NCBI GenBank assembly: GCA_038087875.1
Contig: CM075988.1
Span: 13,082,001 to 13,146,000, forward strand
Origin: Malacoraja senta
Lineage: Eukaryota
Direction of reading: 5' to 3'
DNA: 64,000 nucleotides
Translations under genes and position numbers: made by a program
In this document: one piece after another, positions 21,980 through 44,454 of the stretch
How positions within the stretch are numbered: position 1 is the stretch's first letter
Layout: every line of letters starts with the position of its first letter
The notes under the pieces: generated by a model
What the model was told of the DNA's origin: nothing
Databases searched by the model: none
What the model saw: only the letters and a program-made list of their open reading frames with translations

Positions 21980-23479
21980 GGAAACAGACACAGGCCGTTG
22001 AATGCAAAGGAAGCTTGTTAGCCTTTGTAAACACTTCCAGCCAATGCAAGATAGACCTTATGGAACCATCTTAGTGAGAAGGAGCAGGGGGTGCGAGAGA
22101 TCAGGAAATTGGTCAAACAAGTATACCAAATGTCAATTTCAGATATCAACATCTGAACGTCTGTTGCAAGTACTTTTTAGCCAATCTGTGGTAATAACTT
22201 CAAACTCACATCAGCTCATTTAGATCCATCACCAATTGAGATTTTATTGGCTCTTGATATAAAGTTTAAAAAAATTAACTAAAGCTATCCATGAAGAATA
22301 AGCCATCGCTTTATTACCTTTCAGCTGAGAGCACAAGCTCATGAGAAAATTATTTATTTGTGGGGGACCAAAAGATTGGGGTGAATGGAAAAGTTACATT
22401 TAGCAAAGAAAATGAAATCCACTTGTTAAAAAAAACAACACAAAGTGCTGGAGCACCCGAACAGGTCAGGTATCATCACTGGAGAAGATGGATAGGCAAC
22501 ATTTTGGGTGAGGACAATTCTCAGATTGCCGAGAAGGAGTTGGGGTGCCAGAGAACAAAGACTGTTCGATGTAACCAACAAAAGGGCAGGCATTGGTGGA
22601 GCCCATGCGAGTGCCCACAGCGACAAATTTAACTTGAAGAAAGTGTGACGAGTCAAAATATAAGTAATTGAGAGTGGAAAGATTCTACCAGGTGGAGAGG
22701 AATGTTAGTGGAGGAAAACTGATTTGGGCTCTGTTCAAGGAAAAAGTGGAGGGCCATGAGACCTGGTGGGGATGGAAGTGTAAAGAGAAATCCTCTTGTT
22801 CCTCAAGAAATACAGACTTTTTTCAGGGATACACCAGGAAATTGGGTTTCTACAAGAGAGCTTAGCAGAAAAATCTAACTGGCCTCTGTAAAACTATCAT
22901 GTGCTCAGAATTCAGAAGTAATCATGTTGTCTTTTTGGCTATTAACATTTTCCGGAGAGTCACTTTTGGCCAATCTGCTTTGGTTCCTGTGTTGCTTTGA
23001 ATTCCTAATGAGAAAGAAAAATAGCAAAGTTGTGAGGAATAAGTCCCAAAATTATTCTGTGATGCTCAATTAAGAACCACCCAGGAATATAAATCCAGAG
23101 TGATTATTTTCATCTTCTTACTCAAACACAACTCTGTCACTCCACCCAATCCATTTACTGTTTTACTAAAATGCCTTAGGTTATTTTACCAATTTGAACA
23201 TCAGTACAAGCAAATTCTACTCAGAGTTTAATGAATTTTCAACTATAAAGAATGACAAAGACATGTCTGTATTCTAAGATTTATCTTCTGAAATTTCTTT
23301 CAAGTGATCCCTCAGGATCAATTTTGGACACCCTCTTTTCCACACTGTGAAGATATCCAGTTAACCTTCCAAGATGTAGAGATGACACAATCTCTAACTG
23401 CCTCCATTTTATCATTCTATTTATCTGCTATGTACTTCTGGCCAAGTTACTCCCAGTTTACCTCCAGTTTTCTCAGTGT

Positions 23480-25105: not shown

Positions 25106-25405
25106 AGGGGCTGTCCCACTGTACGAGCTAATTTTAGAGTTCTCCCGAGTTTACCCTGATTCGAACTCGGAGAATTATAGTAATAGTCGCTCGTAGGTAC
25201 TCGGGGCTCTCGTGAAGATTTTTCAACGTTGAAAAATCTTCACGAGCTTACCGCGTTTCCCGAGTACCTGCCGTTAGCATTACGATCCGCTAAGAGACGT
25301 CCTAATCTCTGACATACCCGCTACGTACATTCTACGTGCTTACCACGAGTTTTTTTTTAAACTTGGGAGAGCTCTTGAATTAGCTCGTACAGTGGGACAG
25401 GCCCT
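25106..25405. mobile_element. Harbinger/PIF-type MITE
   Basis: TIR AGGG(G/C)CTGTCCCACTGTACGAGCTA; TTA TSD; the paralogous site at 63428-63430 is empty with a single TTA. Confidence 0.92.
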
Positions 25406-25610
25406 TTAGGCATGATTTCACATGGGATATTTTGTAGCTCTTTGTGACCAGAGTAACCTGTTTAGAACTGGACATACCTTTACAACAGACATCGATATTA
25501 ACTTTTGTGTGCACCGTGACTACACTGTAAGATTCCTATGTTACCTTGCCCTTCGAAATCATTACTTGTCATTTTTTATCCACTATTCAATTCCTTATTT
25601 GTTTGTTTAC

Positions 25611-25700
25611 CAGTTAATTTGCCTTTCCTGCAGCAGAGCAGTAACAAAATCACAGTCGTCACGAAGATTGGCACCGTTACAAATCGGACAGGGAAATGAC
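25611..25700 (-). CDS. Transmembrane exon of the Ig receptor
   Basis: Acceptor tttttgatgtcttacag|GT and donor ACTG|gtaaac; 90 nt, phase 1-1. SHFPVRFVTVPIFVTTVILLLCCRKGKLT: hydrophobic stretch, di-Cys and basic stop-transfer residues, in frame with the C2 exon. Confidence 0.75.
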
Positions 25701-25939
25701 CTGTAAGACATCAAAAAATTGGGTTTCTTATGGTTTGCATCAGTATAAAAGAACGCTGGCAAATATCAGTTAAATTGCCTTCCTTGCGTATCGATTCAGT
25801 GCAATATTAATATCATGAATTGCAAATTAATTTCTCATTAATGCTGCTGTAGATTCACCATACCATTATTTGTGAGATAGGATTGTACCAGCCCATCTAG
25901 GTTTAGATTTCTTATTGCCATGTTTATCGAGGTACAGTG

Positions 25940-27130
25940 AAAAGCTTTGTTTTGGATGATATCAAAACAGATCAGATATGCTGCACATAAATACAATCAC
26001 ATCAAACTCAAGTACAATAAATAAAGCAAAGGAAAAGATGCAAAGTGCAGAATATAGTTCCCAGCATTGTAGCACATCAGTTTCATAGACAAAGCCCATG
26101 ATAGTAAGTTTGCAGATGATATCAAGATTGCTGGGGTCACGGACTGTGAAGAAGGATGCCAAAGTTTACATTATTTTGGCTGCTTTTCTGAGGCAGAGTG
26201 GAGTGTGGATGGAATCAATAGTGGGAAGTCTGGTCTGTATGATGGTCTGGGCTACAGCTACTATTCTCTGCAATTTCTTGTGGCCTGGGCAGAACTGCTC
26301 CCAAACCAAGATGTGTTGCAACCCAACAGTAGGCTTTCTATGGTGCTTTTGTGGAAGTTTGTAAGAGTCATTGAATAATATTATATTATAAGAGTCATTG
26401 AATTATTTATATTATAGGCAAGAAAATTGAAGATCTCAACCATTTCCGCTTCATTGATGGTGATTTGGGCATATTTTGCACCACACTTTCAGACATTGAT
26501 AACTAGCTCGCTCATCTTGCGAACATTGAGGGAGAGGTTATTGTCAATATGTATAGACTTCTGTCCATATTTTCCGAACACCATTTTACTAAGTACTCTA
26601 TCTCCTTCCTTTCTTGTCATTGTTCATGATCCAGCCCACCTCACTGGTGTCAACTACAAATTTGTGGATGGACTTTGAACCAAATTTGGCCGTCCAGTCA
26701 TTAGTGTATCGGGAGTTCTGTAAGGGACTGAGAAAGCATCCTTGCAGGGCACTGATATTGACAATTATTGTGGAGGATGTGTTGCCAGATTGTGGTCCGG
26801 GCATCAGAAATTCAAGACTCATTGATAGAATCCAAATTGTATTGATTTACTGCAATCCATTCAAATTGCAGTTAAGACCCTTTACTCGTTGTATAATGTT
26901 GGCATAAAGTGAGAGGGGGAAAGTTGATTGGAGAAGTGAGGGGCAAGGTTTTTTTTTCACAATGTGGTGGGGGCCTGGAACACACTGCCAGGGCTTGTGG
27001 TGGAGGCAGCTACGATAGTGGTGTTTAAGAGGCTTTTGGATAGGCACATGGATATGCAGGGGATGGAGCGATATGGATCTTGTACAGGCAGATGAGATCA
27101 GTTTAACTTGGCATCATGTTTGGCACAAAC
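25940..27130. mobile_element. Cluster of old Rex1 (minus) and CR1 (plus) fragments
   Basis: Remnants of QGCFLSPL..DW.AKF..IHKFVDDT (minus) and a CR1 3' end at 26900-27130. Confidence 0.6.
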
Positions 27131-27699
27131 ATTGTGATATACTCTTCTGTTTTAATAGCTGACATATCTGACCACCTTAGAATATTAATATAGAAATACC
27201 ATTAATTGTGTTCTCACTAACACGTTAGGCTAGAAATGTTAATTTGTGATTTCAATGTTCGATTGTTCTCATTGACGTTAATTCATTCCATCCACAATGT
27301 GCTTACTCTCTGAAATGTGGATGGTCATATAGATGAATGCAATTCAGGCTGCTTCATGTATGATTCACATAGGCAAAATCTGGCAACTGAGCCTTCCTAT
27401 CAACAACTGGAGAGCTGTCCTAAGCTACCATCTACCTCATTGGAGACCCTTGGACTATTTTTGATTGAACTACTGGACTTTATCTTGCACTAAACATATT
27501 CACACTATTCCCTTTATCATGCATCTATCTGTACAGTGTGGATGGCTCGATTGTAATCATGTATTGTCGTTCTGCTGACTGGAAAGACCGTAGTGTAGAA
27601 TATCATTGATTTGCCAGGAGCCACAGTTGTTACAGGAGCCTGATTTTGCACATCACCCCTCTATAAATGAACGAATTATAAAAATATTGTGGTACTTAC

Positions 27700-28020
27700 T
27701 TTTCCAATCTGATGTCACGTATACTCTCACAGAAGATTCTTTGGCGCCATATGAATTGTAAGCTCTGCAGATATACTTTCCATTGAAGGAATCATCGATC
27801 TTCTCTTTCTGCAGAATTGAATGACTTAATCCAATAGTCAATTGTATCCTTTCAGTTTGCTCTCCTGATTTCATCCAGATGACCGTGGATATTGGATTAC
27901 TGTCCGTGGTACAATTTAGTTGAAGATACGACTGAGGTTCAACATAGATGATGTCTTGGAGCAGAGGCTGCAATTGATGCGCAATAGAATTCCTGTAATG
28001 TATTGCTGGCTGTGGACCAT
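27700..28020 (-). CDS. Ig C2/I-set exon (CD22/Siglec/CEACAM-like)
   Basis: 321 nt, phase 1-1, donor AAAA|gtaagt. YGPQP..LQLNCTTDSNPISTVIWMK..DDSFNGKYICRAYNSYGAKESSVRVYV. The C1 exon end AAT T plus AT GGT CCA gives LNVNYGP. The acceptor is a weak GAG, so the exact 5' boundary is less certain. Confidence 0.85.
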
Positions 28021-28659
28021 CTCAATCAGAACAGTGAAAAAGAAAAGGCATTAGTCACAAGGGCAGCTTCAACAAAGCTTCGAAAGTACCACCTGTCACC
28101 GCTTTGTATTTGCGCCTCATTTTTAATCTGTTATTTAAAATAGATTTTGTATATTTGAACTAACATTTTGATTAACAATAGTGAATGTTTTATAAAATTG
28201 TGGAGGTTATTTGGCCAATTACTCCAGTGTTGGCATAAAAGAGGAGTCCAGATTTTGCCCATACATTCCTTCATCACAAGAGTGAGGCCACGTACTAATT
28301 GAAAGAACAGCACCTTATGTTCTGCTTGGGTAGCTTACACCCCAATGGCATGACATTGAATTCTTCAATTCACAGTTATACTTTTCCTATGCCCTTTGGC
28401 CTAATGGGTGGCTTCAGAACCAACAAGGGCCATGAGAAGTGAATGCAAATCAGACTGGCAATTAATCGAAGAGTTGCCATGACAGTTCAAGATTTGATGG
28501 TTTGTTTGGATCAGTGGTGGTGAGGAAGGCTGCAAGCTTAATAGTTGACTGATAAGAAGTGCAATTGTATACAGTACTGTGTGAGTTTGTGACATTTGAA
28601 CATCCCTGTTAGATTTTAGCAATGTGCAGGTTAATATTTGGCCAATAACCTTTCTCAAT

Positions 28660-29015
28660 TTTCCCTTTCAAAACCCTTCATCAATCAAGAGAATTACTCA
28701 TTAAGAGGCAGATAAGGCTTTGTCCAATGTAATGTGCTGGATATGATTATCTCAATTTGGTCTCCACTACATTGGAGGAACCAAATGCAGATGTTGTGGT
28801 AGTTTTGATGAACACCTGCACTCAGTGGTCTCGTAGTGATCCCCAGCTTCCCAGTATTTCCCACTTTAATTCCCAATTATATTTCTATTCTGACCTGTGC
28901 ATCAGTGGCCTGCTCCACTCCCAGTAGTGATGCCTGACATAAACTAGAACAACATATTATCATCAGTTGAGGTACTTTTGCAATCTTCTGGAATGAATAT
29001 TACATTTTACAACTA
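28660..29015 (+). mobile_element. Penelope-like element GIY-YIG endonuclease remnant
   Basis: Degenerate SNVMCWI..GLHYIGGTK..FDEHLHSV..HFNS..DL..GLLH..KLEQHII..GMNI. Confidence 0.75.
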
Positions 29016-29184
29016 CAGATACTGCTCTCCTATTGTGTCCTTATGTTCCTTTCTCAAACAGCTTATTTGAACTTATTTGCTCCTTAATATCTGATCTGTC
29101 TTAAATTATCTCCATTGTCTTGCCCCTCATTCCTCCCTCCAGCTCTGCTTTGAAAACTGTAAACCCTGCACTCCAGTAGAGTTA

Positions 29185-29490
29185 CTGCAGCAGTAGAGTT
29201 GCTGCCTTACAATGGCAGAGATCCAGGTTCGATCCTGAAGTAGGGTGCTCTATACTGAATTTGTACGTCCTCTCCGTGGGTTTTCTCCGAGATCTGCAGT
29301 TTCCTCCCACACTCCAAAGATGTACAGATTTGTAGGTTGGCTTGATATAAATGTAAATTGTATAAATGTAAACTGTCCCTAATGTGTGTAGCATAGTGTT
29401 AACGTGTGGGGATAGCTGGTAGGCGTGGACTCGGTGGGTCGAAGGGCCTGTTTCCATGCTGTATTTCTAAACAAAACTAAACTAAACTCT
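29185..29490 (+). mobile_element. tRNA-derived V-SINE (HE1-like)
   Basis: gcagtagagttgctgcct..ggttcgatcc head, V-domain, (ctaaa)n tail. Confidence 0.8.
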
Positions 29491-29851
29491 CTCCAGCCTC
29501 TCCATTTCCAAGGAAGGGTCAATGAATCAAATTATTGTTTCTCTTTCATCTGGACTGGGTGAGTTCTTACAATATTTTGGTTCATGTTTCATGTTTCAAC
29601 ATCTGTAGTTTTATGTATTAACTTCCTTAACTTTCTTCATTCAACTTAGTAAAATTCCATCTTCTTCAATCTTTCTGCAAGAACTGCATTCCTAAATCAC
29701 TATAATTATTCAGACAAATGTTTTATCTCTCCTCTAGACCCTTGCTAAAATGGATAGCTAGAAACGTCCACCATGTTCCAGCTAACTCAACAATTGAGAT
29801 TGAGAAAAGCATTGTTGAAATTTGTTACCAGTTAGAAATATTTGCTATGTG

Positions 29852-32800
29852 TGTTAGGCGCTTCCCCCCCGGTGAATGCTATGTACTTACCTTTCTCTGT
29901 TTCTTTCCCGAGTGCAGGCCTTGTGGCTGTGTCTGGAATCAAAGGGTTAAAAGGCTCCTGTACCCGATTGGCCAAGCTGCGTCAGGTGACGGGTGACTCA
30001 TCTGAAGCTTAAATACCAGAGGCTCCCAGAATTCTCTCTCTTCTTCGTCAACCCTGACTTGTGAGCTGACTGCTGGAGTGAGCTGCGGAAGGCCTGGCCA
30101 CATGGCATAGAACTTTGTGTACTTTCACAATTACTTATTAACAAATATTGAATTGGGACGGATAAGGGCTGACCTTAGTGTTTTCGTGTATTTTGTTTTA
30201 GGGTTATATCTCTTTAGGCAGGTTTTAGAGTCTCCGGTTCGACGGTCCATCACGTGGCTGGCTGGAGCACTGTTAAATTGTTTGTTAGTCCATCCATATC
30301 CCTGACTGGGTTGTTTGAATCAGGTTTGGGTTTTGTGTTCCATTGAATAATTAAAACTATTTTTGAACTTGAACCTGGTTTTTGAATTATGTTACGCGGC
30401 TCTGAAGTACCTGCATTCGGGAGTCGTAACAATGTGACCCATGGACTATAAATCTTCGCAGGAATCAATAGGAGAGACAACATGCCTCATTGGGTGATGT
30501 TCCAGCCCATTGTCTCCAGCCATGCTGTTTGGTACATTTACAACGTTGCATAGCTATTAGCATGGATTACTCGCCAGGTAGGTCCCATTCAAAAAGTCAA
30601 TTAATTACAGACTGTTAACTCTCAATCATCAGCAATGTCCATGAATAGCAATAGTGGCATTGTTATCCTGTGGAACTTGCTCACTTGTAGCCTACACCCT
30701 AGTGCTTAGTTTGGATTTTGAGAGAACCACTTCACTTCACACCACATCCTGGCCAAATTGTCTAAGACTACAAGATCCAGAAGACCTTCACCACAGTCAA
30801 TTAAGCTGCATTTCAGACTGAGAAATCAAGGTGAGAGGACAGTTTACTGATGTATCCATTTCTGACATTACCTAGTTATTTAAAAGGCTAGGTGAAATAC
30901 TTAGAACTTAGCCCACGTCTGGTAGATCCATGGTACGTAATTGGAAATTGTATTGAAAGAGCATAAAATGAACATACTTACAATTAACGTTGAGTGTTAT
31001 GTGTTGCATTATCCACTCTTTGCTTGTTGTATGAAGCCTCCTGGTGACTAAGGCTTCTGGTGACTAAGGAAGTCTGTGTTGTGAGGGAAATATTTCTTCC
31101 CTGTTTGTGGTAGCATTGGTGCCCAGGGTTTAACTGGTGGTTTGGTGCTACATTTGATATGGAGTCTAAAGGGAAGGACTTTATTGAGGCTCCTAGTCGG
31201 GAGTTGTTTGATAGATGTACGAAGGAGCATTTGATTTTTCTGGCAGAGAACTATGAAGTGCCTATTAACCCACATTCAAAGAAACAGTCCATTAAATCGG
31301 TGTTGTGGGCTGCGTTGGTGGAGGGTGGGGTTTTGCCTGGCTGTGCAGACAGTCCCACACCTTCTGTTCAGCCTGGTCAGGACATGGAGGCAGTCATTAG
31401 GTTGAAGGAGTTAGAACTCAAAAGAGCAGAGATTCAGCTGCGTGAGGCAGATATTAGGCTGCGGGAGAAGGAATTGGATGCCTCCCGGGTTTCTTCTAGG
31501 GAACGGGAGTTTGATATGAGCAAGAACATCCGCCTGGTTCCCCCCTTTAGTGAGAAGGATGTGGACAAGTTTTTCACAGTGTTTGAACGGGTGGCTTTGT
31601 CCTTGAAGTGGCCTAGGGACATGTGGACCTTGCTATTGCAGTGTGTCCTTGTGGGTAAAGCACGGGAGGTGTACTCGTCTTTGTCTGTTGAAAGCAGTCT
31701 GGACTATGAGTGTGTGAAGTCTACAGTATTAAGGGCTTATGAATTAGTTCCAGAGGCGTACCTGAGGTGCCTGAGTCTGATGAGTGTAGGAATTATTCTG
31801 CGTACATCATGAATGGTTTTGTTTCTCTGGAGGATGGGAGTGATAGAGTTCCAGTATCCATCTTGCGTGATACTGGTGCTACTCAGTCCTTTATATTGGA
31901 GAGTGTACTGCCGTTTTCTGGGGAATCATCGGTTGGGTCAAGTGTCCCTGTGGTAGGATTCGGGATGGATGGCATGGTAGTGCCTTTGCATACCGTGAGT
32001 CTCGAGTCCGAGTTGGTTTCAGGCCGGGTAACTGTTGGGTTACGGCCGTGTTTTCCCGTTGGGGGAGTTTCTGTAATTTTGGGGAATGACTTTGCAGGAG
32101 GTAGAGTTTTAGTTACTCCTGAGGTGACGGCTGTTCCGATGGTGCAGAGTCCTGATAGATTGGCTATGCAGCATCCGAGGGTCTTTGCAGCTTGTGCTGT
32201 CACGAGGGCTATGGCTAAGAGCCAGGCGAAGTTTGGGGATGTAGTGGACCTGAGTGAGAGCATTTTTGGGGATCAGGATGATGGATCCTGTGTTGTGAAG
32301 GGTGTTTCTACATCTCAAGATGGGATAGTGTCTGAAAATGGGCCGGTGTCGCTGTCACGTGACCGGCTGGTTGAGGAGCAAAAGAGTGATCCAGGTTTAT
32401 CTGATCTGTTCGACTGCGCGGTGCCTGAGGGGGATATGGATTCCACAGCAAAGGGGTATTTTCTAAGGGAGGGCTTACTGATGCGAAAGTGGTCTCCCTT
32501 GGATATATCTGGGCATGATGATTGGAGTGTGGTTGATCAGATTGTGATACCTCGTCGATACTCTGTTTGGCTCATGATGGTCCTCTGGGTGGACATTTGG
32601 GGGTCAATAAGACGTATGACCGTATCTTACGGAATTTATTTTGGCCAGGGTTGAAAAAGGACGTGAAACAGCAGTGCAGGTGTTGTCACATTTGCCAGGT
32701 GGCAGGAAAGCCAAACCAATCGATTGTTCCTGCGCCTTTATATCCAATCCCTGTGGTCGGTGAGCCGTTTGAGCGGATTTTAGTTGATTGTGTGGGTCCT

Positions 32801-35800
32801 CTACCTCGGACAAAGGTAGGCAACAAGTTTTTATTGACAATTATGTGTGCGTCTACCCGCTTTCCGGAGGTTGTCCCTTTGCGTAGAATTACTGCCCCTA
32901 CCATTGTGAAGCCTCTCACTAAGTTTTTTTCGTTGTTCGGTTTGCCCAAAGTTGTGCAGAGTGACCAAGGTTCCAACTTCATGTCGAAGGTTTTTGGTCA
33001 GGTAATGAAGTTGTTAGATATTAAGCATTGTTACTCCAGTGCGTATCACCCTGAGAGCCAGGGAACTCTCGAGAGGTTTCACCAGACTTTGAAATCTATG
33101 TTGAGGACTTACTGCCTGGAGTTTGAAAAAGACTGGGATGAGGGGGTTCATCTAGTTATGTTTGCGGTGCGTGAGGTCGTGCAGGAGTCTTTAGGGTTCA
33201 GTCCTGCTGACCTGGTGTTCGCGCATACTGTACGTGGTCCGTTGAGGGTCCTAAAGGAGAAATGGTTGCAGGAGGATACAAAACGTAGTATTTTAGACCA
33301 CGTCTGTACCTTTCGGTCTAGACTGAAGAGGGCATGCGAACTGGCAATGGGTAATCTTGCTTCTGCTCAGTCTAGGATGAAGGGGTGGTTCGACAGGAAG
33401 GCTTCTAGTAGGAATTTTTCTCCAGGTGACAAGGTCCTGGTGTTGTTGCCTATTCCGGGTTCCAGTCTGCAGGCTCGGTATAGCGGTCTCTATCAGGTGG
33501 TTAAGAAGGTTGGTGAAAGGGATTATGTTATTAGTACCCCTGATCGAAGGCGTAAGACTCAGCTCTGTCATGTCAACATGATGAAGCAGTACCATGAGCA
33601 GGAGCCTGTGGAGGTTGATGGGGAGGTGCTGTGTCCTTCGGTTTCATCTAAGCCTGTTTTGGCAGTAGCAGTGCTGCCCCCTGACACGGGTGGTGATGTG
33701 GGTGAGGCACGGTTGTCTGTGGCAGTGACGCAGGGAAGGCTGTGTAACTCTGAGGCTTTGGAGTCGCTTCCCTTGCGGTTGTCGCATTTGACTGAAAGTC
33801 AGCGGAGTGATCTGCTTGCTTTGGTGGAGTCAAATGGGTCACTGTTCTCGGATGTGCCTTCTCAGACGTCTGTGCTGCAGCATGACATTGACGTGGCCGG
33901 TGCTGCGCCAATTAAACAGCATCCGTATCGGGTCAACCCTGACAGGCGTCATCGTCTAGGGAGTCAGGTTGAATATATGCTGCGGCATGGCATTGCTGAA
34001 CCTAGTTGTAGTCCGTGGAGTTCTCCGTGTCTACTGGCTACGAAGGCTAATGGGGAGGACAGGTTTTGCACGGAATTTCGGAAAGTGAATGGTGTAACTA
34101 AGCCGGATTGCTATCCTCTCCCACGAATGGAGGATTGCGTGGATCGTGTGGGAAGTGCATCTTTTGTGTCTAAGTTGGACTTGTTAAAAGGGTATTGGCA
34201 AGTTCCTTTGACTAGGTGGGCGAGGGAGATCTCTGCGTTCATTACGCCTGATAACTTTCTGCAGTACACAGTAATGGCATTTGGGATGCGCAATGCGCCG
34301 GCAACCTTCCAACGGTTGGTGAACATTGTATTGTCTGGTTTGTCCTTCTGTGAGGCATACCTTGATGATTTGGTTGTGTGCTCCAGGTCGTGGATCGAAC
34401 ACATCGGTCATCTGAAGGAGGTATTTGATCGTCTAGCGGAGGCGAAACTAACGATCAATCTGGGGAAGTGTGAGTTTGGCCAGGCCACGGTAACGTATCT
34501 GGGTAAGGTGGTGGGCCGGGGTCAGGTTCGCACTCTCAAGGAAAAGGTGGGGCATATTGTCGCATTTCCTGCTCCAACCTCGAGGACTGAACTCCGTAGG
34601 TATCTGGCTATGGTTGGGTACTATAGAGGGTTCTGTCCAAACCTCTCTGCGGTGGCTGCCCCTTTGACGGATTTGCTGAGTCCGAAGGTAGCTTTTGTGT
34701 GGTCCGCAGAGTGTCAACAAGCCTTTGATCAGACTAAAAGTCTTCTGGTGCGCGCACCCGTGCTTGCGGCACCTGATTTTGAGCGTCCATTTAAGCTGGC
34801 AGTGGATGCTAGTGATCGTGGGGTTGGGGGAGTTCTTCTACAGGATGATTCAGATGGGGTGGAGCATCCAGTTTCGTACTTCTCTAAGAAGTTTAATCGT
34901 CATCAGAAGTGGTACTCCACCATTGAGAAAGAAGCCCTTGCTATTTTAATGTCTCTGAATCATTTCGAGGTTTATGTTGGTTCCTCGAATGTCCCTGTCA
35001 TCGTACTCACGGATCATAATCCGTTGGTATTTTTGCATAGTATGAAGAATAAGAACCGGTGGTTAATGAGCTGGAGTTTGCAGCTGCAAGACTACAACCT
35101 GGAGGTCTGGCATATCCGTGGCAAGGATAATGTCTTGGCTGACGCCTTGTCGCGCCAGTAGAGTTTTAGCTCCTGAATAGTTTCTGGGATTTGGTGGTGT
35201 TTTTTCTCTCTTCTTCCGAAACTTATTCAGTATCTTTGGGGGGGGGGGGGTGTTAGGTGCTTCCCCCCCACTGGTGAATGCTATGTACTTACCTTTCTCT
35301 GTTTCTTTCCCGAGTGCAGGCCTTGTGGCTGTGAGTCTGGAATCAAAGTGTTAAAAGGCTCCTGTACCCGATTGGCCAAGCTGCGTCAGGTGACGGGTGA
35401 CTCATCTGAAGCTTAAATACCAGAGGCTCCCAGAATTCTCTCTCTTTTTCGTCGACCCTGACTTGTGAGCTGACTGCTGGAGTGAGCTGCGGAAGGCCTG
35501 GCCACATGGCATAGAACTTTGTGTACTTTCACAATTACTTATTAACAAATATTGAATTGGGACGGATAAGGGCTGACCTTAGTGTTTTCGTGTATTTTGT
35601 TTCAGGGTTATATCTCTTTAGGCAGGTTTTAGAGTCTCCGGTTCGACGGTCCATCACGTGGCTGGCTGGAGCACTGTTAAATTGTTTGTTAGTCCATCCA
35701 TATCCCTGACTGGGTTGTTTGAATCAGGGTTGGGTTTTGTGTTCCATTGAATAATTAAAACTATTTTTGAACTTGAACCTGGTTTTTGAAGTATGTTACG

Positions 35801-35835
35801 CGGCTCTGAAGTACCTGCATTCGGGAGTCGTCACA
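29852..35835 (+). mobile_element. Gypsy LTR retrotransposon of Gmr1-type domain order (gag-PR-IN-RT-RH), rearranged
   Basis: LTRs 29852-30431 and 35251-35835 (TG..CA); polypurine tract 35238-35250; ATGTG TSD; gag 31159 to about 31770 (truncated); protease ILRDTGA; ORF 32567-35161 has the integrase (HxxxxH/CxxC, DCVGP, SDQG, YHPESQG) before RT (YLDD) and RNase H. Confidence 0.95.
30432..31036. repeat. ~605-bp host duplication (second copy 35836-36441) including the last 55 nt and donor of the C1 exon
   Basis: Near-identical sequence follows both LTRs, with roughly ten substitutions or indels read by eye. Confidence 0.95.
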
Positions 35836-36386
35836 ATGTGACCCATGGACTATAAATCTTCGCAGGAATCAATAGGAGAGACAACATGCCTCATTGGGTG
35901 ATGTTCTATCCCATTGTCTCCAGCCATACTGTTTTGGTACATTTACAACGTTGCATAGCTATTAGCATGGATTACCCACCAGGTAGGTCCCATTCAAAAA
36001 GTCAATTAATTACAGACTGTTAACTCTCAAACATCAGCAATGTCCATGAATAGCAATGGTGGCATTGTTATCCTGTGGAACTTGCTCACTTGTAGCCTAC
36101 ACCCTAGTGCTTAGTTTGGATTTTGAGAGAACCACTTCACTTCACACCACATCCTGGCCAAATTGTCTAAGACTACAAGATCCAGAAGACCTTCACCACA
36201 GTCAATTAAGCTGCATTTCAGACTGAGAAATCAAGGTGAGAGGACAGTTTACTGATGTATCCATTTCTGACATTACCTAGTTATTTAAAAGGCTAGGTGA
36301 AATACTTAGAACTTAGCCCACGTCTGGTAGATCCATGGTACGTAATTGGAAATTGTAATGAAAGAGCATAAAATGAACATACTTAC

Positions 36387-36713
36387 AATTAACGTTGAGT
36401 GTTATGTGTTGCATTATCCACTCTTTGCTTGTTGTATGAAGGACCTGACAAGTACAAACTGTCCTGTGGTCTTGCAAGGTTGGAGTAAAACTAATTTGAC
36501 TTGTTGCGTTAAATGTGCCATCAGAGTTCCTGGAGGGGGAGAGTTTTGTGGTAATATTAACAGCTGATTTTGTAGCTTGAGTGTTGTGAGGATGTTGCCA
36601 TTGCATTGTGATGTTCTCAGGATAAAATCCCCACGCATGGCAGTACAAAACAGATGCTTTCTCTGCTATTAAATCTCCCTGAGTCATTCGAATTTTTGGT
36701 GTAGATTCTGGGA
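36387..36713 (-). CDS. Ig C1-set exon (B7-H6/SIRP/tapasin-like C1)
   Basis: Acceptor ttatttgttacag|TC and donor AATT|gtaagt; 327 nt, phase 1-1. LYCHAWGFYPENITMQW..SRNSDGTFNATSQISFTP..CTCQVLH matches C1-set CxxxGFYP, NxDGTF and CxVxH motifs. Joins the V exon in frame (..QVY-VPE..). Confidence 0.9.
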
Positions 36714-36826
36714 CTGTAACAAATAACATGAAACAAAGTTATGTTGCGCTATATACTTACATACTTATCCTTTCGTGCTAAATAAAAAACACAAAGCATG
36801 TTAATTAGCATTTATCCACTTAAGGT

Positions 36827-36910
36827 ATATAGGTCTGAAGAAGGGTCTTGACCTGAAACGTCACGCATTCCTTCTCTCCAGAGATGCTGCCTGTCCCCTT
36901 GTGTTACTTC
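36827..36910 (+). ncRNA. Minimal type I hammerhead-ribozyme-like motif in a pLTR-like repeat
   Basis: aggt-CTGAAGA-a-GGGTC tt GACCT-GAAA-C-GTC-ac: CUGANGA and GAAA cores, 5-bp stem II, palindromic ACGT helix III and a GUC cleavage triplet. Confidence 0.55.
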
Positions 36911-38703
36911 AGCATTGTGTATCTATCTTTAATGTAAAAAGCAATTCCACTTCAGTAAGTGTGAATCAGAAATATTATTTTTTCCTGGTGATAACCAATG
37001 TCTTGTAGACCCGCACAAAGGCCTTCCCATGAGTGTTATAAATTGTATTGTTAATTGTTAGCTTGGATACATTTTGACAAATTTTGCATGACCTACTCTG
37101 CTTAGGCCCCCTTCGGTCATGGCTGACTATGGGTGTCTCCAGAATGTTATTCCCTATATGGAGGATGCCTGTGCATGACTTTGTTTAATGTGGGGAGACT
37201 GGTGCACAGACAGCCACCCCACAGTCCTCGACAGATCTGGGTCAGGATCCAGTGGCATGGAGTCCAAGATGACTGGAGACCCTTTTCTACTGCAGCCTTC
37301 ATCCACCTTCCCAGCCGATTTGACGCTCCACAAAGGTCAGCCATCATCCTCCGCCTGTTCCACAGTTGAGGTCTTGGTTGGATTGCTCTTTTCCCACTAT
37401 TGTTTTTGATATTATCGATATTAAGCCAAAGACCTCAGGGCATATGTAGGAAGGAACTGCAGATGCTGGTTTAAACTGAAGATAGAAACAAAAAGCTGGA
37501 GTAACTCAGTGGGTCAGACTGCATCTCTGGAGAAGGAACAGGTGATGTTTCAGGTCTTGACCTCTCAGGACATCTTACCCTATTCACCATTCAGTTGTGA
37601 GTACTGAGGGGAGAAGCAAACAGAACCAAGATCCTTTACGTCATGGGTCGGTCAACTGTTCAGGAGAGGGGGAGTAGAGTAGGGCCAAGGAAGGAATAAT
37701 TGTCGGGATCTCTATAGGAAGCAGAACAAATTGACAGTGATCCATTTTTCCAGAACAAATAATAGAGAGTAGTTATGCAGGAATAGACAGAGTACAAGTT
37801 ATACATTTAACCTGTTTAGTGCCACCCCCGTGTATACTTGGGTCATTGGGCAAAAGTGAAAAAAATCTTGGCAGTGAACAGGTTAAACAGAGGTGCATTT
37901 AACATCAGATATGGATTTAACAATTGTTGGTGACCTGAAAGACCAACTGAACACCCAGGATTATAATGTGACAAGGAAATCAGAGATCTGTCCTAAAAGA
38001 AAGTGTAAAATTCTTGGATGAAGATACTGCAGAAAGATGAGGAAGGGAAGACAAGAAGGGAAGGTACACAAAAATGCTGGAGAAACTCAGCGGGTGCAGC
38101 AGCATCTATGGAGCGAAGGAAATAGGCAACGTTTCGGGCCGAAACCCTTCTTCCGACTAGATGTGGCAATATTGATGAAGGGGGTCAGTGCATTGCAGGA
38201 GAGAGAGAGAATAATCTGCCAAAGAGAAGAGAAACATGTAACGACCATGGTAATAATCTTTCAAACTTTGTAGATTAAGCAGTGATGACTGAGGATTTTG
38301 GAGGCGGTTATAGAGTTATAGTGCTGTACAAAATGGAAATAAGCCCTTTGGCCCACCATACCCATTCCCGACAAAGTTAGGATTTGGATCTAGTCCCATT
38401 TGCCTGCAGCTTACAACCTAATTGTATGTGCACATAGGTATCTAACCTACAAACTACTAAATTATTCAGTAGATTACAGAATATAAATTTAACCTAAACA
38501 AGTATTGAAATATAGGCAATCCAAATATTTGGAAGAGTTGTATTTTAACAATTGTAAAACCAGCTAATAGAGTCATACAGCGTGGAAACAGGCCCTTCGG
38601 CCCAACTTGCCCAAGCTGACCTATATGCCCCATCTACACTAGTACCACCTGCCTGCGCTTGGCCATTAACCCTCTAAACCCATCCTATCCATCCTGCCAA
38701 TAC

Positions 38704-38763
38704 TTGGAGCAGATAATAACAATGAAGGAAGCACAACATTAATTTCAGTGATAGTCTTCATAC
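38704..38763 (-). CDS. Paralogous short hydrophobic exon-like segment between V and C1
   Basis: ttag|GT ATG AAG..GCT CCA A|gtattg; 60 nt; MKTITEINVVLPSLLLSAP. Homologous to 40580-40648 and differs by an in-frame 9-nt indel. Confidence 0.3.
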
Positions 38764-39239
38764 CTAACCTATGATTATTTGCATTAAAACTGCAGATGCT
38801 GGAGATCTGAGTTGAAAATAAAAATATTGCAAACTCTGAGCTGATCAGGCAGAATCTGTGGGAAAATATACTTTAATTGTTTCTCTTAACACAGTTGTAA
38901 CCTATGCTGCTCAGTGTTTCTACCTTTCTCCAACTTTATTTTATGATCCCTTTACCTTGGCTACGTAACCGCACAGACTACATTTGACAGAAAATTCCAC
39001 AATCAACATTGGTAAATTACTTATTATTCTTTTTGGTTGCAATGAATTACAATTAATTAGCCTGACTTCCCATGGTGTGTGTTATTAATCTATATCAGTG
39101 GTAATGTGGTATGATATGTAAGTATAATCAATACACATATTATATGAACTGCATTTCTGCAGAATTATATAAATACTTTACCATAAACCTGTATAGAGTG
39201 CAGAGACTGAAGATCATCATAGTATTACAAATACTTTAC

Positions 39240-39587
39240 CATAAACCTGTATTCGTGTTCCTTGGCCCATTTTATTAATTGGAGGGAAGACACTTGGTAC
39301 TTTCACCGCACAAGTGTAGTTGTAAACAGAGTGACCAACCGATACATTTTCAATCTTCAGTGATACCGTACAGTGTTTGAAACCATCCCAGAGGGGGTGA
39401 GGATTACAGAGCAAGTTGTCCATGTTGTAAGTTGCATCCGCCCCTTCCGGCGATGTCCGATACCAGGAAACACGGAGCCAGACATCCACACTTGCATTAT
39501 AAGTAAATGTACAGTTTAATGTGACGGATTGGCTCCTCCGCACACTGACCAGACGTGGCTGGGTCAACTCTGTGATCAACGGAACTC
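39240..39587 (-). CDS. Ig V-set exon (VJ-type, NKp30/SIRP/CD8-like) of a non-rearranging receptor gene
   Basis: Acceptor ttatgttccatcag|GA and donor TATG|gtaaag; 348 nt, phase 1-1, open. Translation GVPLITELTQPRLVSVRRSQSVTLNCTF..VSWYR..CTVSLKIENVS..YNYTCAVKVP..MGQGTRIQVY has the B-strand Cys, C-strand Trp, YxC and a J-like G-x-G-T motif. Confidence 0.9.
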
Positions 39588-40579
39588 CTGATGGAACATA
39601 AATAAATTTGTTATTTTTACTTGCATTAATAGTCCCACGGAAGCTCACTGTGTGTGTGTCAAACTCCGTGCAAACTGCTCGCACACCCTGCAACCCGACT
39701 CTCCAACCGTCCCTCTGCCCACTCCGGCTCAGCCGCCGCCTGGCCCGTTCCTGTCCAACCACCCACTGCTGCCACTCGGCCCGTCCCGTCCCCACCCTGC
39801 CAACCCACTACCGTCCCCGCCCTGCCCACCCACTATTTTTTCTCACCAATATGTAATTACTGATTCTGTTCTATTCTGTATTGTAGTTTTTGCACATTCC
39901 ACAGGCATTGCCACTTTTCATTTCACTGCACATCTCGTATGCGTATGTGACAAACAAACATGACTTGACTTGACTACCTGCCTGCCTGCTCGCTGCCGCC
40001 GCTGGGCCACAGGGCGGGGGGAGAATGGAGTTAATGTTCGTCACAGTAGGCACCACGAGCTTTTGATCAGCTGGTGGAGAAGATCTCCTCCGAGAAGGCC
40101 GTGAGGGTGAGTTACCGGAGGTGACGGACCCGGGGGGCTGGGTATATGGGACCGCCATTGCCACAGAGGGTGGGCGGGAGAGAGGTGTGAGTGATGAGGG
40201 AGAGAGAGATGGGACAAGGGCTTCCACTGGGCCTCCACTGCCACCGCCGGTGGTGGGGGAGAGGATAGACAAGTTACTGTGTGGAGGGGAGAGAGGAGTT
40301 TATGAGTGAGGCAGGACAGGCCGCCGCTGGTGGGGCACGTGCGGTTTTTAAGATTTCTAAACCCTGATAACTTTTACAATACACTATTGATCGGAACGAA
40401 ACGTGTTGCACTCGCAGCACAGGAGAACAGTGAGTAACCTGGCAAAAAAACATAGCACTATCATGTGCTGTTTTTGCGCAAATAGAAAACCCGCGCAATC
40501 CGGAAGAACATAAGATCAGAGTTTTAGTTATGTATAGATAGATGATAGATAGAAGATAGATTGTAAAACAAACAAATAC

Positions 40580-40648
40580 TTGACACAAATGGAGTAGATA
40601 CAAACAATGAAAGAAACACAAAATCAAATTCAGTGATGATGTTCATAC
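40580..40648 (-). CDS. Candidate signal-peptide exon of the Ig receptor
   Basis: ttag|GT ATG AAC..GTG TCA A|gtattt; 69 nt, phase 1-1; MNIITEFDFVFLSLFVSTPFVS joins the V exon in frame (R-VPLIT). Splice sites are weak. Confidence 0.45.
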
Positions 40649-41271
40649 CTAATCAATTCTTTACATTAAAACTGCAGATGCTGGAAATCTGAATTGAAAC
40701 GGAAAATATTTCAGACTATCAGTTGATCAGGCAGAATTTGTGAAAAAAGAAACATTAACTGTTTCTCTTACCAGAGATGTAAGCTGTTCTGCTGAGTGTT
40801 TCTACCTGTCTCTGCCTTTACTTTATGATCTTTTACATTGGCTGCATAACTCCATATCCACGAGCAGTAGCTCTCATCAACAACCAAACGTCTGTAGCCT
40901 CCTTTTGCTCTGGTATTTTATTTAATTCTTCACATGTTTAAATTATAATGATTTTTTTAAATTGTCTATGCATATCATGTTGTTACTTGCGAGCAAAACA
41001 CCAAGGCAAATTCCTTGTATGTATACTTACTTGGCTAATAAAATGTATTTAATTCAATCATAAACTACATTTAACAAAAATATCAAAATCAACAGTGCTG
41101 AATTACTTCTCATTGTTCTTGGTTGAAACACATGACATTTAATTAGCCTGGTTTCCAATGGGATGTGATTCTTATTAGTGTATATCGCTGTTTCTGAATG
41201 TGGTATGATATGCAAGTAAAATTAATAGGCACATATTATAGAAACTGCATTTTTACAGAATTATATAATTA

Positions 41272-41540
41272 CTTTAGCATAAATCTGTATTTGTGTTGCA
41301 TCACCCATTTTATATGATGGAGTGAACACCTGGTATCTTCACCTCGAGTGTAGTTATAAACAGAGTGACAAACAGAACATTTTCTTCAGTGATACTGTAC
41401 AGGATTTGAGGGGGTGAGGAATGCAGAGCGATTTGTTAATTTGGTAAGTAGCATCAGGACACTCCCGGTGATGTCCGATATCAGGAAACACTGAGCCAGG
41501 CATCCACACTTCCATTATAAGTAAATGCACAGTTTATCAC
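41272..41540 (-). pseudogene. Degenerate tandem copy of the V exon
   Basis: Aligns to 39240-39530 (INCAFTYNGSVDAWLSVS*YRTSP..). The conserved Trp codon is TGA, there are several indels, the 5' part is missing and the donor is mutated (GCTAAAG). Confidence 0.85.
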
Positions 41541-43089
41541 AAACTAATTGGGTAAAATACAGAGCTCAATACTCTCCCAGATGTATTTGTTTGAAACAAG
41601 GAACTGCAGATCCTGCCAGAGATAGATGGTACAATGGGCAAAGGGGTGGGTGATGGGGAGATCAAACCAGATAGGGTAGGAGGGTCTGAATTGAAGATTG
41701 GCTTTCCATTGTATCAATTATTTTTCTTAAATAATATATTTGCCTTTTTCAGATTTAAGGTTATGTTGGTTTGTGATGCAATGTTCTGCCTGAATTTGTT
41801 TCATTTGCGGACACCATCAGAGGTATCCGAATGTTGCTATTATGATCCTTGGCTGATAATTACTTCAAGTTCTGAAGTGACTGCTAAAATCATAAGATCA
41901 TAAGTAACAGCAGATTAAGGCCATTCAGCCCATCACTGCCATTCAATCATAGCTGATCTATCTCTCTCCCTCAACCCCTTTCTCCTGCCTTCTCCGTATA
42001 ACGCCTGACACACATTTTAATTAAGAATCTGTTAATCTCCTCCTTAAAAATATCACTTCTAACTTTTATTGTAGCTTTTAATAAATGCCATAATATTTTT
42101 TGAAAAAATGTACATTACAACTTAAAATATCTAATCATTGTACTATCTTGAAGCAGGAGTTGAATCCTTCTCTGGTTCTGAATGTCCCTGATGCTAATTA
42201 AACTCTCAGCCTATCCCCTGCTCCAAGAGAACTTTGTATGACTTTGCTGAAAAACATCACCTATTCCTTCTCTCCAGAGATGTTGCCTGTCCCGTTGAGT
42301 TACTCCAGCGTTTTTTGTCTATCTTTGGTTTAAACTAGCATCTACAGTTCCTTCCTACAACGGACTTTGCATGATTATGGATGATTTGTTTAGATGACTA
42401 TGATCCACTTTAATTATCAGTTCAATCACTAATAATTAATGGTACATTTATTTTTTTATTGCATTTAATGTGCCTGTTGAGCAGAGCAAGTAAAAATGTC
42501 ATTGTTCCATTCATAAATTGTTCACACGACAATTCTGAGTCTAGAATTTGCATGTTCTCCCTATGACCTTATGGGTTCCATCTGGGCATTTTAGTCTCCT
42601 CCCAAGTGAAGGTTGGTAGAAGGAAATCAAAAAAATGTAAGTTCTTGAAAATCTGAAATAAAAAGTGCTTGAAAAACTCAGCAGGTCAGACAGCATCAGT
42701 GAAAATAAAGGCAATGTTTCATTAGAAACCTTTTGCAGTTTTGATAATAGAGTTGCAGACAGACCCAAAATATTGACCGTTTCACTTTCCATGGATACAC
42801 CCTGACTCACTGGGCTTCTTTTTGTTTTTATATTAGTGCGGATTACTTGGTTGAATGGTCACAGGATATAGATCAGTGGTAGATGATTTCACCACTAATC
42901 CACACCTTGCCCCCAGGGTGTAGATGAATGGTAGAATATGGGATGGGGACTGGGTAGTTGATGTGGCAAATAAAGTGGTTTACAGGAGGATCATTTTAGG
43001 AATAGGAGCCTTATTATTGGGGTGGACGCGTTGAAATGAAGGGTTTGTTCCATGTTGTTTCACTCAACAGTATAACAAGTAAAACTCAC

Positions 43090-43099
43090 ATTGCATCAT
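43090..43099 (-). CDS. Candidate first coding exon (ATG ATG CAA T|gtgagt), preceded by 5' UTR-like sequence to about 43255
   Basis: Strong phase-1 donor after a double ATG. In frame with the 40648 exon (T+GT = Cys). It cannot join the V exon directly (T+GA = stop). Confidence 0.35.
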
Positions 43100-44454
43100 C
43101 ACCTCTGATTCAGATCAATTTTCTGAACCCTCGTTCTTCAGGGAAAGTCACTTTCTTCTTCCTTGTGGAAGACGGCACACAGCTCCGTGGAGAACTGAAC
43201 AATCAGAAATGAACCTGTAGCCATTTGCATTGGGTAGAAGACAAACTAAATAGATCTTAGGTATGTCGGAAAGAACTGCAGATGCTGGTTTAAATCGAAG
43301 GTGGACACAAAATGCTGGAGTAACTAAGCGAGACAGATCTTTGGAGGGAAAGAATGTGTGACTGTTTCGGGTCGAATCCCTTTTTCAGATACCACTTAGA
43401 CATTTCCTGTGCTGGTTTTTGAGGCAGTCAGTTATTGGTGAATGGTTTTTGCATGTTCTCAATACGCAGTGAAATTGTTTAAAATTAATAATGATTTGTT
43501 TAAAAATTAATTCCATAGAAATGCATCATAATAGCTCACTAATTTAATTATTAATATACTAAGCAATTATTTCGCATTTAATCTGTAAAATCTGTAAACT
43601 CCATTCACAATTTTTGAACAGCTCATGTTTTAGCTTTCTCTGCTCAAAGCAGAATAATCTTAATGTTTTTTATTAAATTCAAATCTTTAATTAATTCTGA
43701 GGTTCAACCAAATAAAATCCCACTTCCAAATTTTCCATTAAAATACAGACATTTTGCATTGTAAACACCCTCAGTCATGCAGCCACAGCCAATGAACTTA
43801 CAAAATGGCAACCTTCCTTCTCCAGCTGTTCTGACATGATGCCTCAGCCAAGATAGAGGCAATCTGCTCAGATCCCTGCTCCGGAGATCTAAGCTGCTTC
43901 TAGCCATTAGCTTCTGTAAATCTCCCCACAGACTGATCAAATAATCACACCACTAACACTTTGGCTTTTGTTAAATTTTTGTGATCATTTCAATCTATGA
44001 GCTGATTCCGTAATACACAAGCTGAAAGAAGGATATTAACCAAGACACTGACCTGTTGAGTATCTCTGCTCCAGTAGGAACACCATCAGTTGCAATAAAG
44101 TGTTTCCTGCCAACATTCCCTTAATTTGGTACATTTCTTTCAAACTTCACAATATCCAACTGTCACAGAATTATCTTGTGCATTATATTCTCTCGTGATC
44201 AATTCAGGTTCATCGCGGTCACAGTGGTTGAAGAGACACATCTGACCACGTACAATTGGAGAGGATGTACAGTGCATTCGGAAAGTAATCAGAACCCTTC
44301 ACTTTTTCCACATCTTGTTACGTTACAGCCTTATTATAAAATGGATTAAATTCTTTTTTTTTAATTTAAATTTCAATTCAATTTTATTGTCATTGCACAG
44401 ATACAAGCATGGGTACAACGAAATACAGTTTAGCGTCTGTTCGTAGTAATATTG

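Follow-up and report, generated by a model that had tools for sequence, protein, structure and literature searches.

A non-rearranging VJ-C1-I-set-transmembrane receptor gene in a skate, and the gene cluster around it

Introduction

We analysed a 64,000-nucleotide stretch of the genome of the skate Malacoraja senta (GenBank assembly GCA_038087875.1, contig CM075988.1, forward-strand positions 13,082,001 to 13,146,000; below, the window). On its minus strand lies a non-rearranging receptor gene of the immunoglobulin superfamily (IgSF), gene A, whose exons encode a variable-joining (VJ) domain, a C1-set domain, a C2/I-set domain and a transmembrane (TM) segment. Non-rearranging genes that hold V and J in a single exon and also encode C1 domains are rare, and they are the main comparative material on the antigen-receptor ancestor as it was before the RAG transposon. 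An earlier reading made from the letters alone (the sequence-only reading) had placed such a gene at 25611-43099, suggested that it may belong to an unnamed elasmobranch family, and assigned it no orthologue.

Results

Gene model

Gene A is built, in order of transcription, from the following parts. Bare coordinates are those of the window; scaffold coordinates carry the prefix G000:C12.

44053..44116, minus strand: candidate leader exon (M-LAGNT-LLQLMVFLL-EQRYST), ending G/GT in phase 1
41279..41537, minus strand: pseudo-V exon in the leader intron, with V remnants, frameshifts and, internally, two TGA and one TAA
39240..39587, minus strand: V exon with a germline-joined J motif (..YNYTCAVKVP..KMGQGTRIQVY), phase 1/1
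36387..36713, minus strand: C1-set exon (..LYCHAWGFYPENITMQW..DGTF..CTCQVLH..), phase 1/1
27700..28020, minus strand: I-set/C2 exon (YGPQPAIHYRN..LQLNCTTDSNP..VIW..GKYICRAYNSYG..), phase 1/1
25611..25700, minus strand: stalk/TM exon (HFPVR-FVTVPIFVTTVILLLLCC-RKGKLT), donor G/GTAAAC in phase 1
22905..23004, minus strand: conserved C-terminal (tail) exon (..NSKQHRNQ..NMITSEF-stop), whose acceptor leaves phase 2

The four core exons have canonical AG acceptors and GT donors, each in phase 1/1, and their lengths are all multiples of three (V, 348 nt; C1, 327 nt; I/C2, 321 nt; TM, 90 nt). Joined in silico behind the candidate leader they give a stop-free frame of 1150 nt, so that the four phase-1 exons in one open frame of the sequence-only reading were all recovered. 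Splicing of the V, C1, I and TM exons is predicted from the sequence and from the orthologues described below. The start of the I/C2 exon at 28020 (T/AT, encoding Tyr, then GPQP) was set by colinearity with ..NVNYGPQP.. of the predicted proteins P0005, P0021 and P0023; two AGs further on, at 27970 (phase 0) and 27955, were set aside as acceptors, since the orthologues back 28020.

The leader was sought by scanning for an ATG followed by a hydrophobic core and a G/GT donor. The candidate at 44116-44053 joins the V exon in frame (G+GA, giving Gly), and the junction matches ..QG-VPLIT.. of P0001, a Rhinoraja paralogue whose leader it also resembles; an identical peptide lies upstream of a duplicated V exon, V(B), described below. 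An alternative in-frame ATG at 44134 would prepend MYQIKG. The 5' end proposed earlier, at 43099, failed: its short open stretch (ATG ATG CAA T/GT) forms a stop on joining the V exon (T+GA). The core exons thus lie within the range first given, but the gene runs past both ends of it, to the candidate leader on one side and the tail exon (23004-22905) on the other.

Searches of sequencing runs found no RNA run matching either half of the gene. The reads that aligned at the locus were DNA contigs only, and a run presumed to be RNA touched only high-copy repeats.

Domain composition

The V exon matched the Pfam V-set profile (E 2.5e-8). Since the alignment reaches profile position 108/109, the G strand and J motif lie inside the exon, as had been read from its MGQGTRIQV motif. 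Across 12 family V domains C25, W41, C92, G107, G109 and T110 are invariant, the last three making up the G-x-G-T of the J motif; equally invariant are two additional cysteines, C60 and C72, which form an extra Cys pair located between C' and E. The second domain, taken earlier for a classical C1-set domain, matched C1-set with an E of 1.8e-12 (47.9 bits, versus 19.6 bits for the CD80-like C2 profile, C2-set_2). The third, taken for a C2/I domain, matched I-set (E 3.3e-8, 33.9 bits), gave no C1-set match and is followed by the TM exon at 25700-25611.

A profile of the family V domains, searched against the PDB, scored highest against a T-cell receptor (TCR) V-alpha (E 1.3e-8, 38 bits), with lambda light chains and a VNAR next in line; SIRP V domains scored at most 12.6 bits. 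There were no nectin, PVR or TIGIT chains among the best 60 of the 269 PDB matches to this profile, and UrIg2 was not among the best 60 of 655 V-domain matches. An AlphaFold2 model of the V exon had a pLDDT of 90.9, and a Foldseek search with it placed lambda V domains, VpreB-J and a TCR at the top, the E for lambda V and VpreB-J being ~3e-7. At the sequence level the V exon is 20-31% identical to immunoglobulin (Ig) lambda and TCR V domains.

The C1 profile found Ig heavy-chain constant domains, UrIg2 and SIRP domains d2/d3 in the PDB. UrIg2 was also the top PDB match of the C1 exon as a single sequence, but its high score was the sum of three weak C1 matches (E 0.008-0.33 each), and UrIg2 was rejected as a close relative on that ground. 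The third domain matched I-set domains of titin, DSCAM, Robo, contactin and MAG. Among the best matches listed for each of the three domains there was no V domain of the nectin group or of a Siglec.

No recombination signal sequence (RSS) was found on either strand of 25000-45000 (heptamer with at most one mismatch, spacer of 12 or 23 +/-1, nonamer with at most two mismatches), where shuffled sequences gave 0.44; the V exon therefore lacks an RSS, in agreement with the sequence-only reading. In place of the separate, RSS-flanked V and J of a rearranging antigen-receptor gene, V through G-x-G-T is one open exon, and this V of antigen-receptor type is followed by a C1-set domain.

Family and distribution

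An exhaustive search with the V exon returned six clear relatives, all of them elasmobranch predictions, which bore automatic names such as Siglec-12/13 (Rhinoraja, Narcine), MAG-like (whale shark, zebra shark) and sialoadhesin-like (Pristiophorus), or were called uncharacterized or hypothetical (Heterodontus, Chiloscyllium). Across the family, the public labels (Siglec-10/11/12/13/14, MAG-like, sialoadhesin-like, syg-2-like, HMCN2, SIRP-alpha-like) are inconsistent and for the most part wrong.

P0005, from the sawshark Pristiophorus, is colinear with gene A in all parts (identity 52% in V, 57% in C1 and 55% in the I-set domain, or 54-55% for the last). Per-domain identity to P0005 and P0021 spans 52-69%, with 57-69% for the C1 exon, and a stingray, a catshark and an epaulette shark have partial orthologues. 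More distant relatives with the same architecture and motifs occur in paddlefish, sturgeon, bowfin and gar; these have in common the extra Cys pair, G-x-G-T, GFYP..W, a ..KY-x-P.. linker, an I-set domain and a TM motif R-x-V-T-Y-P-L-F-V. From its presence in sharks and rays as well as in sturgeon and paddlefish, gar and bowfin, it follows that the family is older than the split between cartilaginous and bony fishes, and the I-set and TM exons have been kept in orthologues across >400 My. The relatives sought among vertebrates by sequence search include orthologues of the same architecture in sharks, rays and non-teleost ray-finned fishes; the combination of modules stands, and the family is not confined to elasmobranchs.

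Two types of member can be told apart. Type-1 proteins (P0005, P0021, P0023, P0028, P0030 and P0033) are colinear through a V domain with the extra Cys pair and G-x-G-T, a C1 domain, a ..Y-x-P.. linker, an I-set domain and a TM motif R-x-V-x-x-P-[IL]-F-V, and gene A has these shared motifs. The type-2 gene C, described below, has V, C1, I-set and TM parts as well; the second domains of both types all pass the Pfam C1-set cut-off. In Rhinoraja a short-tailed form (P0001) occurs beside a form with an immunoreceptor tyrosine-based inhibitory motif (ITIM; P0019).

Outside the family, a nine-member profile matched SIRP-beta/alpha best (E 6.5e-37 for a multi-domain entry, 25-28% identity), and further matches were to a lizard Ig protein, a teleost CD22-like protein, Robo3 and CADM3 (E 3.9e-9). 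SIRP was also the best named single-sequence match (E 1e-10). SIRP is the nearest named family, with 25-28% identity over roughly half the length, and full-length orthology to nectin, CADM, CD96 or SIRP, which would have refuted the sequence-only reading, was not seen. Literature searches found no published description or name of the family, which is best described as an unnamed VJ-C1-I-TM family among the non-rearranging VJ-C1 receptors of the IgSF.

DNA contigs of two related species differed from the C1 exon at six synonymous and three nonsynonymous positions, the latter falling at two codons; these are the best-supported differences only, and the count may be incomplete. Divergence was ~2.8% in the C1 exon and 6-7% in adjacent intron pieces. 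Judged by these substitutions, the pattern is that of a coding exon under apparent purifying selection.

The 3' end

Over 33 residues the tail exon at 23004-22905 is colinear with the C-termini of P0021, P0023 and P0005, which are shark and stingray orthologues. Its acceptor leaves phase 2, in conflict with the phase 1 of the TM donor. A micro-exon that could bridge the two was looked for between 25611 and 23004 and not found, and no alternative GT, GC or AT donor fits. Splicing in phase 1 into the tail exon gives an unrelated 27-residue tail, whereas reading through past the TM exon ends at RKGKLTGKQTNKELNSG-stop, with a TAA at 25578-25576. Given the mismatch between donor and tail exon, the protein would end either by read-through or in a shifted frame. 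Next to the membrane, a few codons that the orthologues have (their C-x-x-C-N stretch) seem to have been lost from the skate gene. In another frame the TM exon (25611-25700, minus strand) reads C-P-I-C-N-G, which resembles the juxtamembrane C-x-x-C-N of the orthologues, probably by chance.

The gene cluster

V domains of this type were found in the skate genome only on this scaffold, where four intact copies and two remnants lie within ~90 kb. Gene A, on the minus strand, is one of at least four paralogues there; the parts of the other three are as follows.

61213..61312, minus strand: tail exon of gene B (second copy of the tail exon)
G000:C12:13146247-13146336, minus strand: TM exon of gene B
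G000:C12:13149135-13149367, minus strand: second pseudo-V remnant, downstream of V(B)
G000:C12:13149780-13150127, minus strand: V exon of gene B, V(B), 3.8 kb past the window end
G000:C12:~13154493-13154556, minus strand: leader candidate of gene B
G000:C12:13190439-13195336, plus strand: gene C (loci L030 and L024), a type-2 V-C1-I-TM gene with a stop directly after the TM segment (..IIYFCLF-stop)
Plus strand: gene D, with type-2 V, I-set and TM exons found and the C1 exon outside the sequence covered

Gene B has its own leader candidate, pseudo-V, TM exon and tail exon and is without C1 and I-set exons. It arose by a segmental duplication with 93% identity, in which 21980-44362 corresponds to 60283-72802 (coordinates extended past the window). 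The TM exons of genes A and B are 99% identical, versus 93% in the flanks, and the leader, V and TM exons of gene B join in frame in silico. All gene B exons are in phase 1, so that V(B) could also splice into gene A.

Gene C is either tail-less or a pseudogene. Exons encoding an immunoreceptor tyrosine-based switch motif (ITSM; DTIYAVV), an ITIM (VSYADIVI) and SEYSVV lie 13-17 kb downstream of the gene D TM exon.

At the pseudo-V (41279..41537), family V domains align by tblastn partly in frame -3 and partly in frame -1. Remnants of this kind upstream of V(A), the V exon of gene A, and downstream of V(B) point to repeated local duplication of a V cassette. The long open reading frames in the 90 kb of flank examined are transposon-like.

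No match to alpha1/alpha2 domains of class I molecules of the major histocompatibility complex (MHC) fell on this scaffold (0 of 88 genome-wide), which is weak evidence against linkage, many copies being on unplaced scaffolds. Most of the 88 were near-identical and on small unplaced scaffolds; two were on C9.

Two subfamilies with a homogenised V exon

In the tree of C1 domains, type 1 (skate gene A, stingray, sawshark, epaulette shark; 89/95) and type 2 (100/99) form separate clades. As each clade holds sharks and batoids, the split between the types is older than the shark-ray divergence. The V tree instead gathers all skate V domains, of both types, into a single clade (97/98), and an approximately unbiased (AU) test rejected the grouping of V domains by type (p 0.004 and 0.001), the clades having been named after the tree was seen. 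Of the per-domain phylogenies that the sequence-only reading had suggested as a check, those for V and C1 were built, pig SIRP-alpha domains being the only comparators from outside the family and standing in the C1 tree.

The nucleotide alignments show where the two histories part. Gene A aligns with genes C and D only over 39621-39193 (87-88% identity), a homogenised patch made up of the V exon and ~35-45 bp on each side. Between type-1 and type-2 genes this patch of ~430 bp is 87-89% identical, while the C1 domains of the two types are ~30% identical. Such a disparity implies that V exons have been exchanged or homogenised among the paralogues. Within the V exon dS is 0.02-0.19, and most differences alter the amino acid; comparisons of gene A with the other genes give a dN/dS of 0.66-0.77, and the pairs B/C, B/D and C/D one of 1.8-3.0, values based on 14-44 differences. 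The amino-acid differences concentrate in stretches resembling complementarity-determining regions (CDR1, CDR2 and CDR3) and in the A' strand. We read this pattern as probable gene conversion or exchange limited to the V exon, together with relaxed or diversifying selection on the putative binding face, the counts being small and the exons short.

Intron insertions and repeats

Two further features lie in the introns of gene A.

29851..36441, plus strand: 6.6-kb insertion in the C1-C2 intron, a retroelement core with flanking direct repeats
39171..39194, minus strand: 24-nt duplicate of the V-exon end and donor (ACAGGTTTATG/GTAAAGTATT), ~50 nt into the V-C1 intron

The 4.2-kb core (31037-35249) encodes gag, protease and an integrase that precedes reverse transcriptase/RNase H, and has a G-rich tract at its 3' end. 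On either side of it stands a direct repeat of 1.19 kb (29851-31036 and 35250-36441, 98.2% identical) that consists of host DNA. The duplicated DNA takes in the final 55 bp of the C1 exon together with its donor, with the copy at 30982-31036. In the whole genome, the 437 bp at the end of the repeat, the part tested, were present at these two sites only, whereas the 5' end of the core (tested over 31051-31160) is high-copy; for the part tested, the repeats were accordingly rejected as long terminal repeats.

The 24-nt duplicate at 39171-39194 is a tandem copy and a possible decoy donor; it matches the V-exon ends of genes B, C and D at 100%. The V-C1 intron also contains very high-copy short repeats (36833-36925, 37445-37534, 38060-38160 and 38567-38613), at which summed contig depth was 10^5-10^7 in all four runs and many joints linked one repeat to another, as for elements resembling short interspersed nuclear elements (SINEs).

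Discussion

Proposed function

Gene A probably encodes a type-I membrane glycoprotein with a signal peptide, a VJ domain, a C1 domain, an I/C2 domain, a stalk, a TM segment preceded by Arg and a short tail, and belongs to an ancient type-1 family within a cluster of paired receptors. An Arg stands before the hydrophobic TM core in 8/8 type-1 sequences, from skate to gar, 16-18 hydrophobic residues ahead of the cytoplasmic basic residues, while type-2 TM segments are uncharged. This position resembles that in FcR-gamma-coupled receptors such as GPVI, NKp46 and Fc-alpha-RI. The cluster also has the structure of a paired-receptor locus, in that linked genes with like ectodomains differ in their signalling ends, one with ITIM/ITSM and the other with a basic TM residue and a short tail. 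We infer that it is a paired-receptor system.

If so, the similar V domains of types 1 and 2 would see the same or related ligands. Type-2 members would then signal inhibition through ITIM/ITSM and recruitment of SHP phosphatases, and the TM Arg of type-1 members would couple them to an Asp-bearing adaptor of FcR-gamma type that carries an immunoreceptor tyrosine-based activation motif; in addition or instead, type-1 members might contact PDZ scaffolds through the conserved ..TSEF end. The skate genome contains an FcR-gamma-like TM exon with Asp (..CYVLDAILFIYG..YCRLK; G000:C5:19864556-19864642, plus strand, locus L037), the only place in it that strongly matched the TM family of CD3-zeta and FcR-gamma (58 bits).

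Several observations weigh against this interpretation. The leader is a candidate only, and no RNA run matched the gene. The phase conflict leaves the skate 3' end uncertain and implies that the PDZ-type end may be untranslated in skate. The type-1 Arg sits at the membrane edge and may be merely juxtamembrane, and a complex prediction that paired the TM segment of gene A with the FcR-gamma-like TM of the skate, the latter in two copies, scored 0.02, which is evidence neither way. The retroelement in the intron, the duplicated exon fragment and the pseudo-V are possible signs of decay, and the stop after the TM segment of gene C indicates that not every member of the cluster need be functional. 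As to V exon exchange, the naming of AU-test clades after inspection of the tree and the small numbers of differences behind the dN/dS values limit what those statistics can carry.

Alternative explanations

The main rival is that type-1 members are adhesion molecules of the nectin/CADM/CRTAM kind, whose ectodomains make cell-cell contact while the ends ..TSEF, ..TSEL or ..ITEF bind PDZ scaffolds. Elasmobranch type-1 tails do end in S/T-x-F/L, resembling a class-I PDZ ligand, and lack tyrosine motifs; adhesion molecules of the IgSF commonly have a linker of the ..L-x-V-x-Y-x-P.. kind and an I-set third domain with NP, and the third domain of the family matches titin, DSCAM, Robo, contactin and MAG, with CADM3 appearing weakly in the profile search. 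Yet the orthologues in paddlefish, sturgeon, gar and bowfin lack the PDZ-like end, and in skate the phase of the tail exon does not fit. TCR and Ig V domains are what the V profile picks out, without a nectin, PVR or TIGIT chain in the best 60 of its 269 PDB matches, the second domain fits C1-set over CD80-like C2, and neighbours with the same V carry ITIM/ITSM. We consider the adhesion role unlikely. A second rival is that gene A is a decaying duplicate, a pseudogene or unprocessed relic, that keeps open ectodomain exons and is no longer expressed as a full receptor: the TM/tail phase conflict, the 6.6-kb insertion with its copy of an exon end and donor, the pseudo-V in the leader intron, the loss of C1 and C2 from sister copy B and the failure to find a matching RNA run would all fit. 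However, the four core exons are open with consensus splice sites, and even with read-through to the stop the product would be a normal receptor with a short tail. Most of the differences between the C1 exon and that of two related species are synonymous, and the exon diverges less than the introns do (~2.8% versus 6-7%); the TM exon is more alike in A and B (99%) than the flanks are (93%). This makes decay, in our view, quite unlikely.

Descent is the issue in the remaining three cases. That the family is the fish orthologue of SIRP-alpha/beta with a diverged third domain gains from SIRP being the best named match outside it, both with a single sequence and with the profile; from the NCBI name SIRP-alpha-like given to the paddlefish and sturgeon proteins; and from the VJ domain, C1 second domain and coexistence of inhibitory forms with short-tailed, Arg-TM forms, which SIRP members have too. 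Against it stand the low identity over about half the length, a V profile that gives SIRP at most 12.6 bits versus 38 for TCR V-alpha, a third domain that is I-set without a C1-set match, and the C1 tree, in which pig SIRP-alpha d2 and d3 fall outside the family on long branches; we regard SIRP orthology as very unlikely. A Siglec/MAG-type lectin is suggested by pipeline names in NCBI and UniRef, by the weakly MAG-like third domain and by type-2 tails with an ITIM and ITIM-like motifs, as in CD33-related Siglecs. Siglec V domains, though, as far as is known lack the inter-sheet B-F disulfide, have a conserved sialic-acid-binding Arg and are followed by C2-set domains, whereas the skate V has the canonical B-F cysteines, Trp41 and a J motif and matches Ig/TCR V, and the second domain is C1-set in all members. 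We give the lectin next to no credence. Nor do we put appreciable weight on an antigen-receptor gene that is germline-joined, as some skate genes are, and that encodes an Ig light chain or a TCR-like chain, although a VJ exon is followed by a C1 exon and V matches lambda light chains and TCR V-alpha best: V identity is 20-31%, there is no RSS relic, the V type is limited to four clustered copies, and the C1 exon has no stop and runs in phase into conserved I-set and TM exons.

Beyond a paired-receptor role for the cluster lies a bolder possibility, which we hold tentatively and rather doubt. The cluster could be an ancient germline system of variable receptors, in which a VJ exon like that of TCR or Ig light chains is passed by conversion among activating-type, inhibitory-type and V-only genes, with positive selection on the CDR-like loops; the family would then be one of few membrane-bound relatives still extant of the VJ-C1 receptor that preceded the splitting of a V exon by the RAG transposon, conserved in lineages as far apart as sharks and gar, while teleosts and tetrapods have lost it or have it in unrecognisable form.

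Comparison with known systems

Among named families the nearest in plan is SIRP, whose members are also type-I receptors with a non-rearranging V bearing a J-like G strand, followed by C1, and which likewise comes in ITIM-bearing forms and short-tailed forms with a basic TM residue. SIRP, however, is V-C1-C1, while the third domain of the skate family is I-set, its V appears not to be specifically related, and the extra V Cys pair and the VR-x-V-x-x-P-[IL]-F-V TM motif are specific to it. The nectin/CADM/CRTAM/PVR group has a three-domain V-C-C ectodomain, a single TM segment and a short PDZ-ligand-like tail in common with elasmobranch type-1 members. It differs in that the skate second domain is C1-set, and no nectin-group chain stood among the best PDB matches listed, CADM3 being a weak match; to our knowledge, V domains of this group lack a G-x-G-T J motif. 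Ig lambda and TCR V-alpha supply the best sequence and fold matches of the skate V and possess the J motif, but the skate V and J lie in one exon without RSS, at 20-31% identity and with an extra Cys pair.

UrIg and UrIg2 are non-rearranging shark genes of VJ plus C1 type, with VJ in a single exon and no RSS; their proteins have C1 domains only (nine in nurse shark UrIg2) and form antibody-like dimers, and the genes show linkage to the MHC in the case of UrIg and to the Ig/TCR complex in that of UrIg2 (PMC12227049). The skate gene is likewise an elasmobranch single-exon VJ with a C1-type domain and no RSS, and UrIg2 was the top PDB match of its C1 exon. It differs in having one C1 domain, one I-set domain and a TM segment, in showing no specific V or C relationship, and in lying on a scaffold without an MHC class I match. 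The family thus adds a membrane-bound example to the non-rearranging VJ-C1 genes, with a VJ-C1-I-TM architecture unlike SIRP, tapasin and UrIg and a V domain nearer to TCR V-alpha and Ig lambda than to SIRP.

In its working, as distinct from its descent, the cluster may be compared with paired receptors (Siglec-5/14, Siglec-11/16, SIRP-alpha/beta, KIR, PILR), in which near-identical ligand-binding domains, kept alike by gene conversion, are joined to opposite signalling ends. The homogenised patch in the skate is similarly confined to the N-terminal exon, and an activating function of the type-1 genes would complete the likeness; the V-only gene B has no counterpart in that comparison. The cluster makes it possible to test, in jawed vertebrates of the oldest kind, how inhibitory receptors and putatively activating ones are paired while homogenisation of V stays limited to one exon. 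By analogy, it would work most like the SIRP-alpha/beta or Siglec-5/14 pair.

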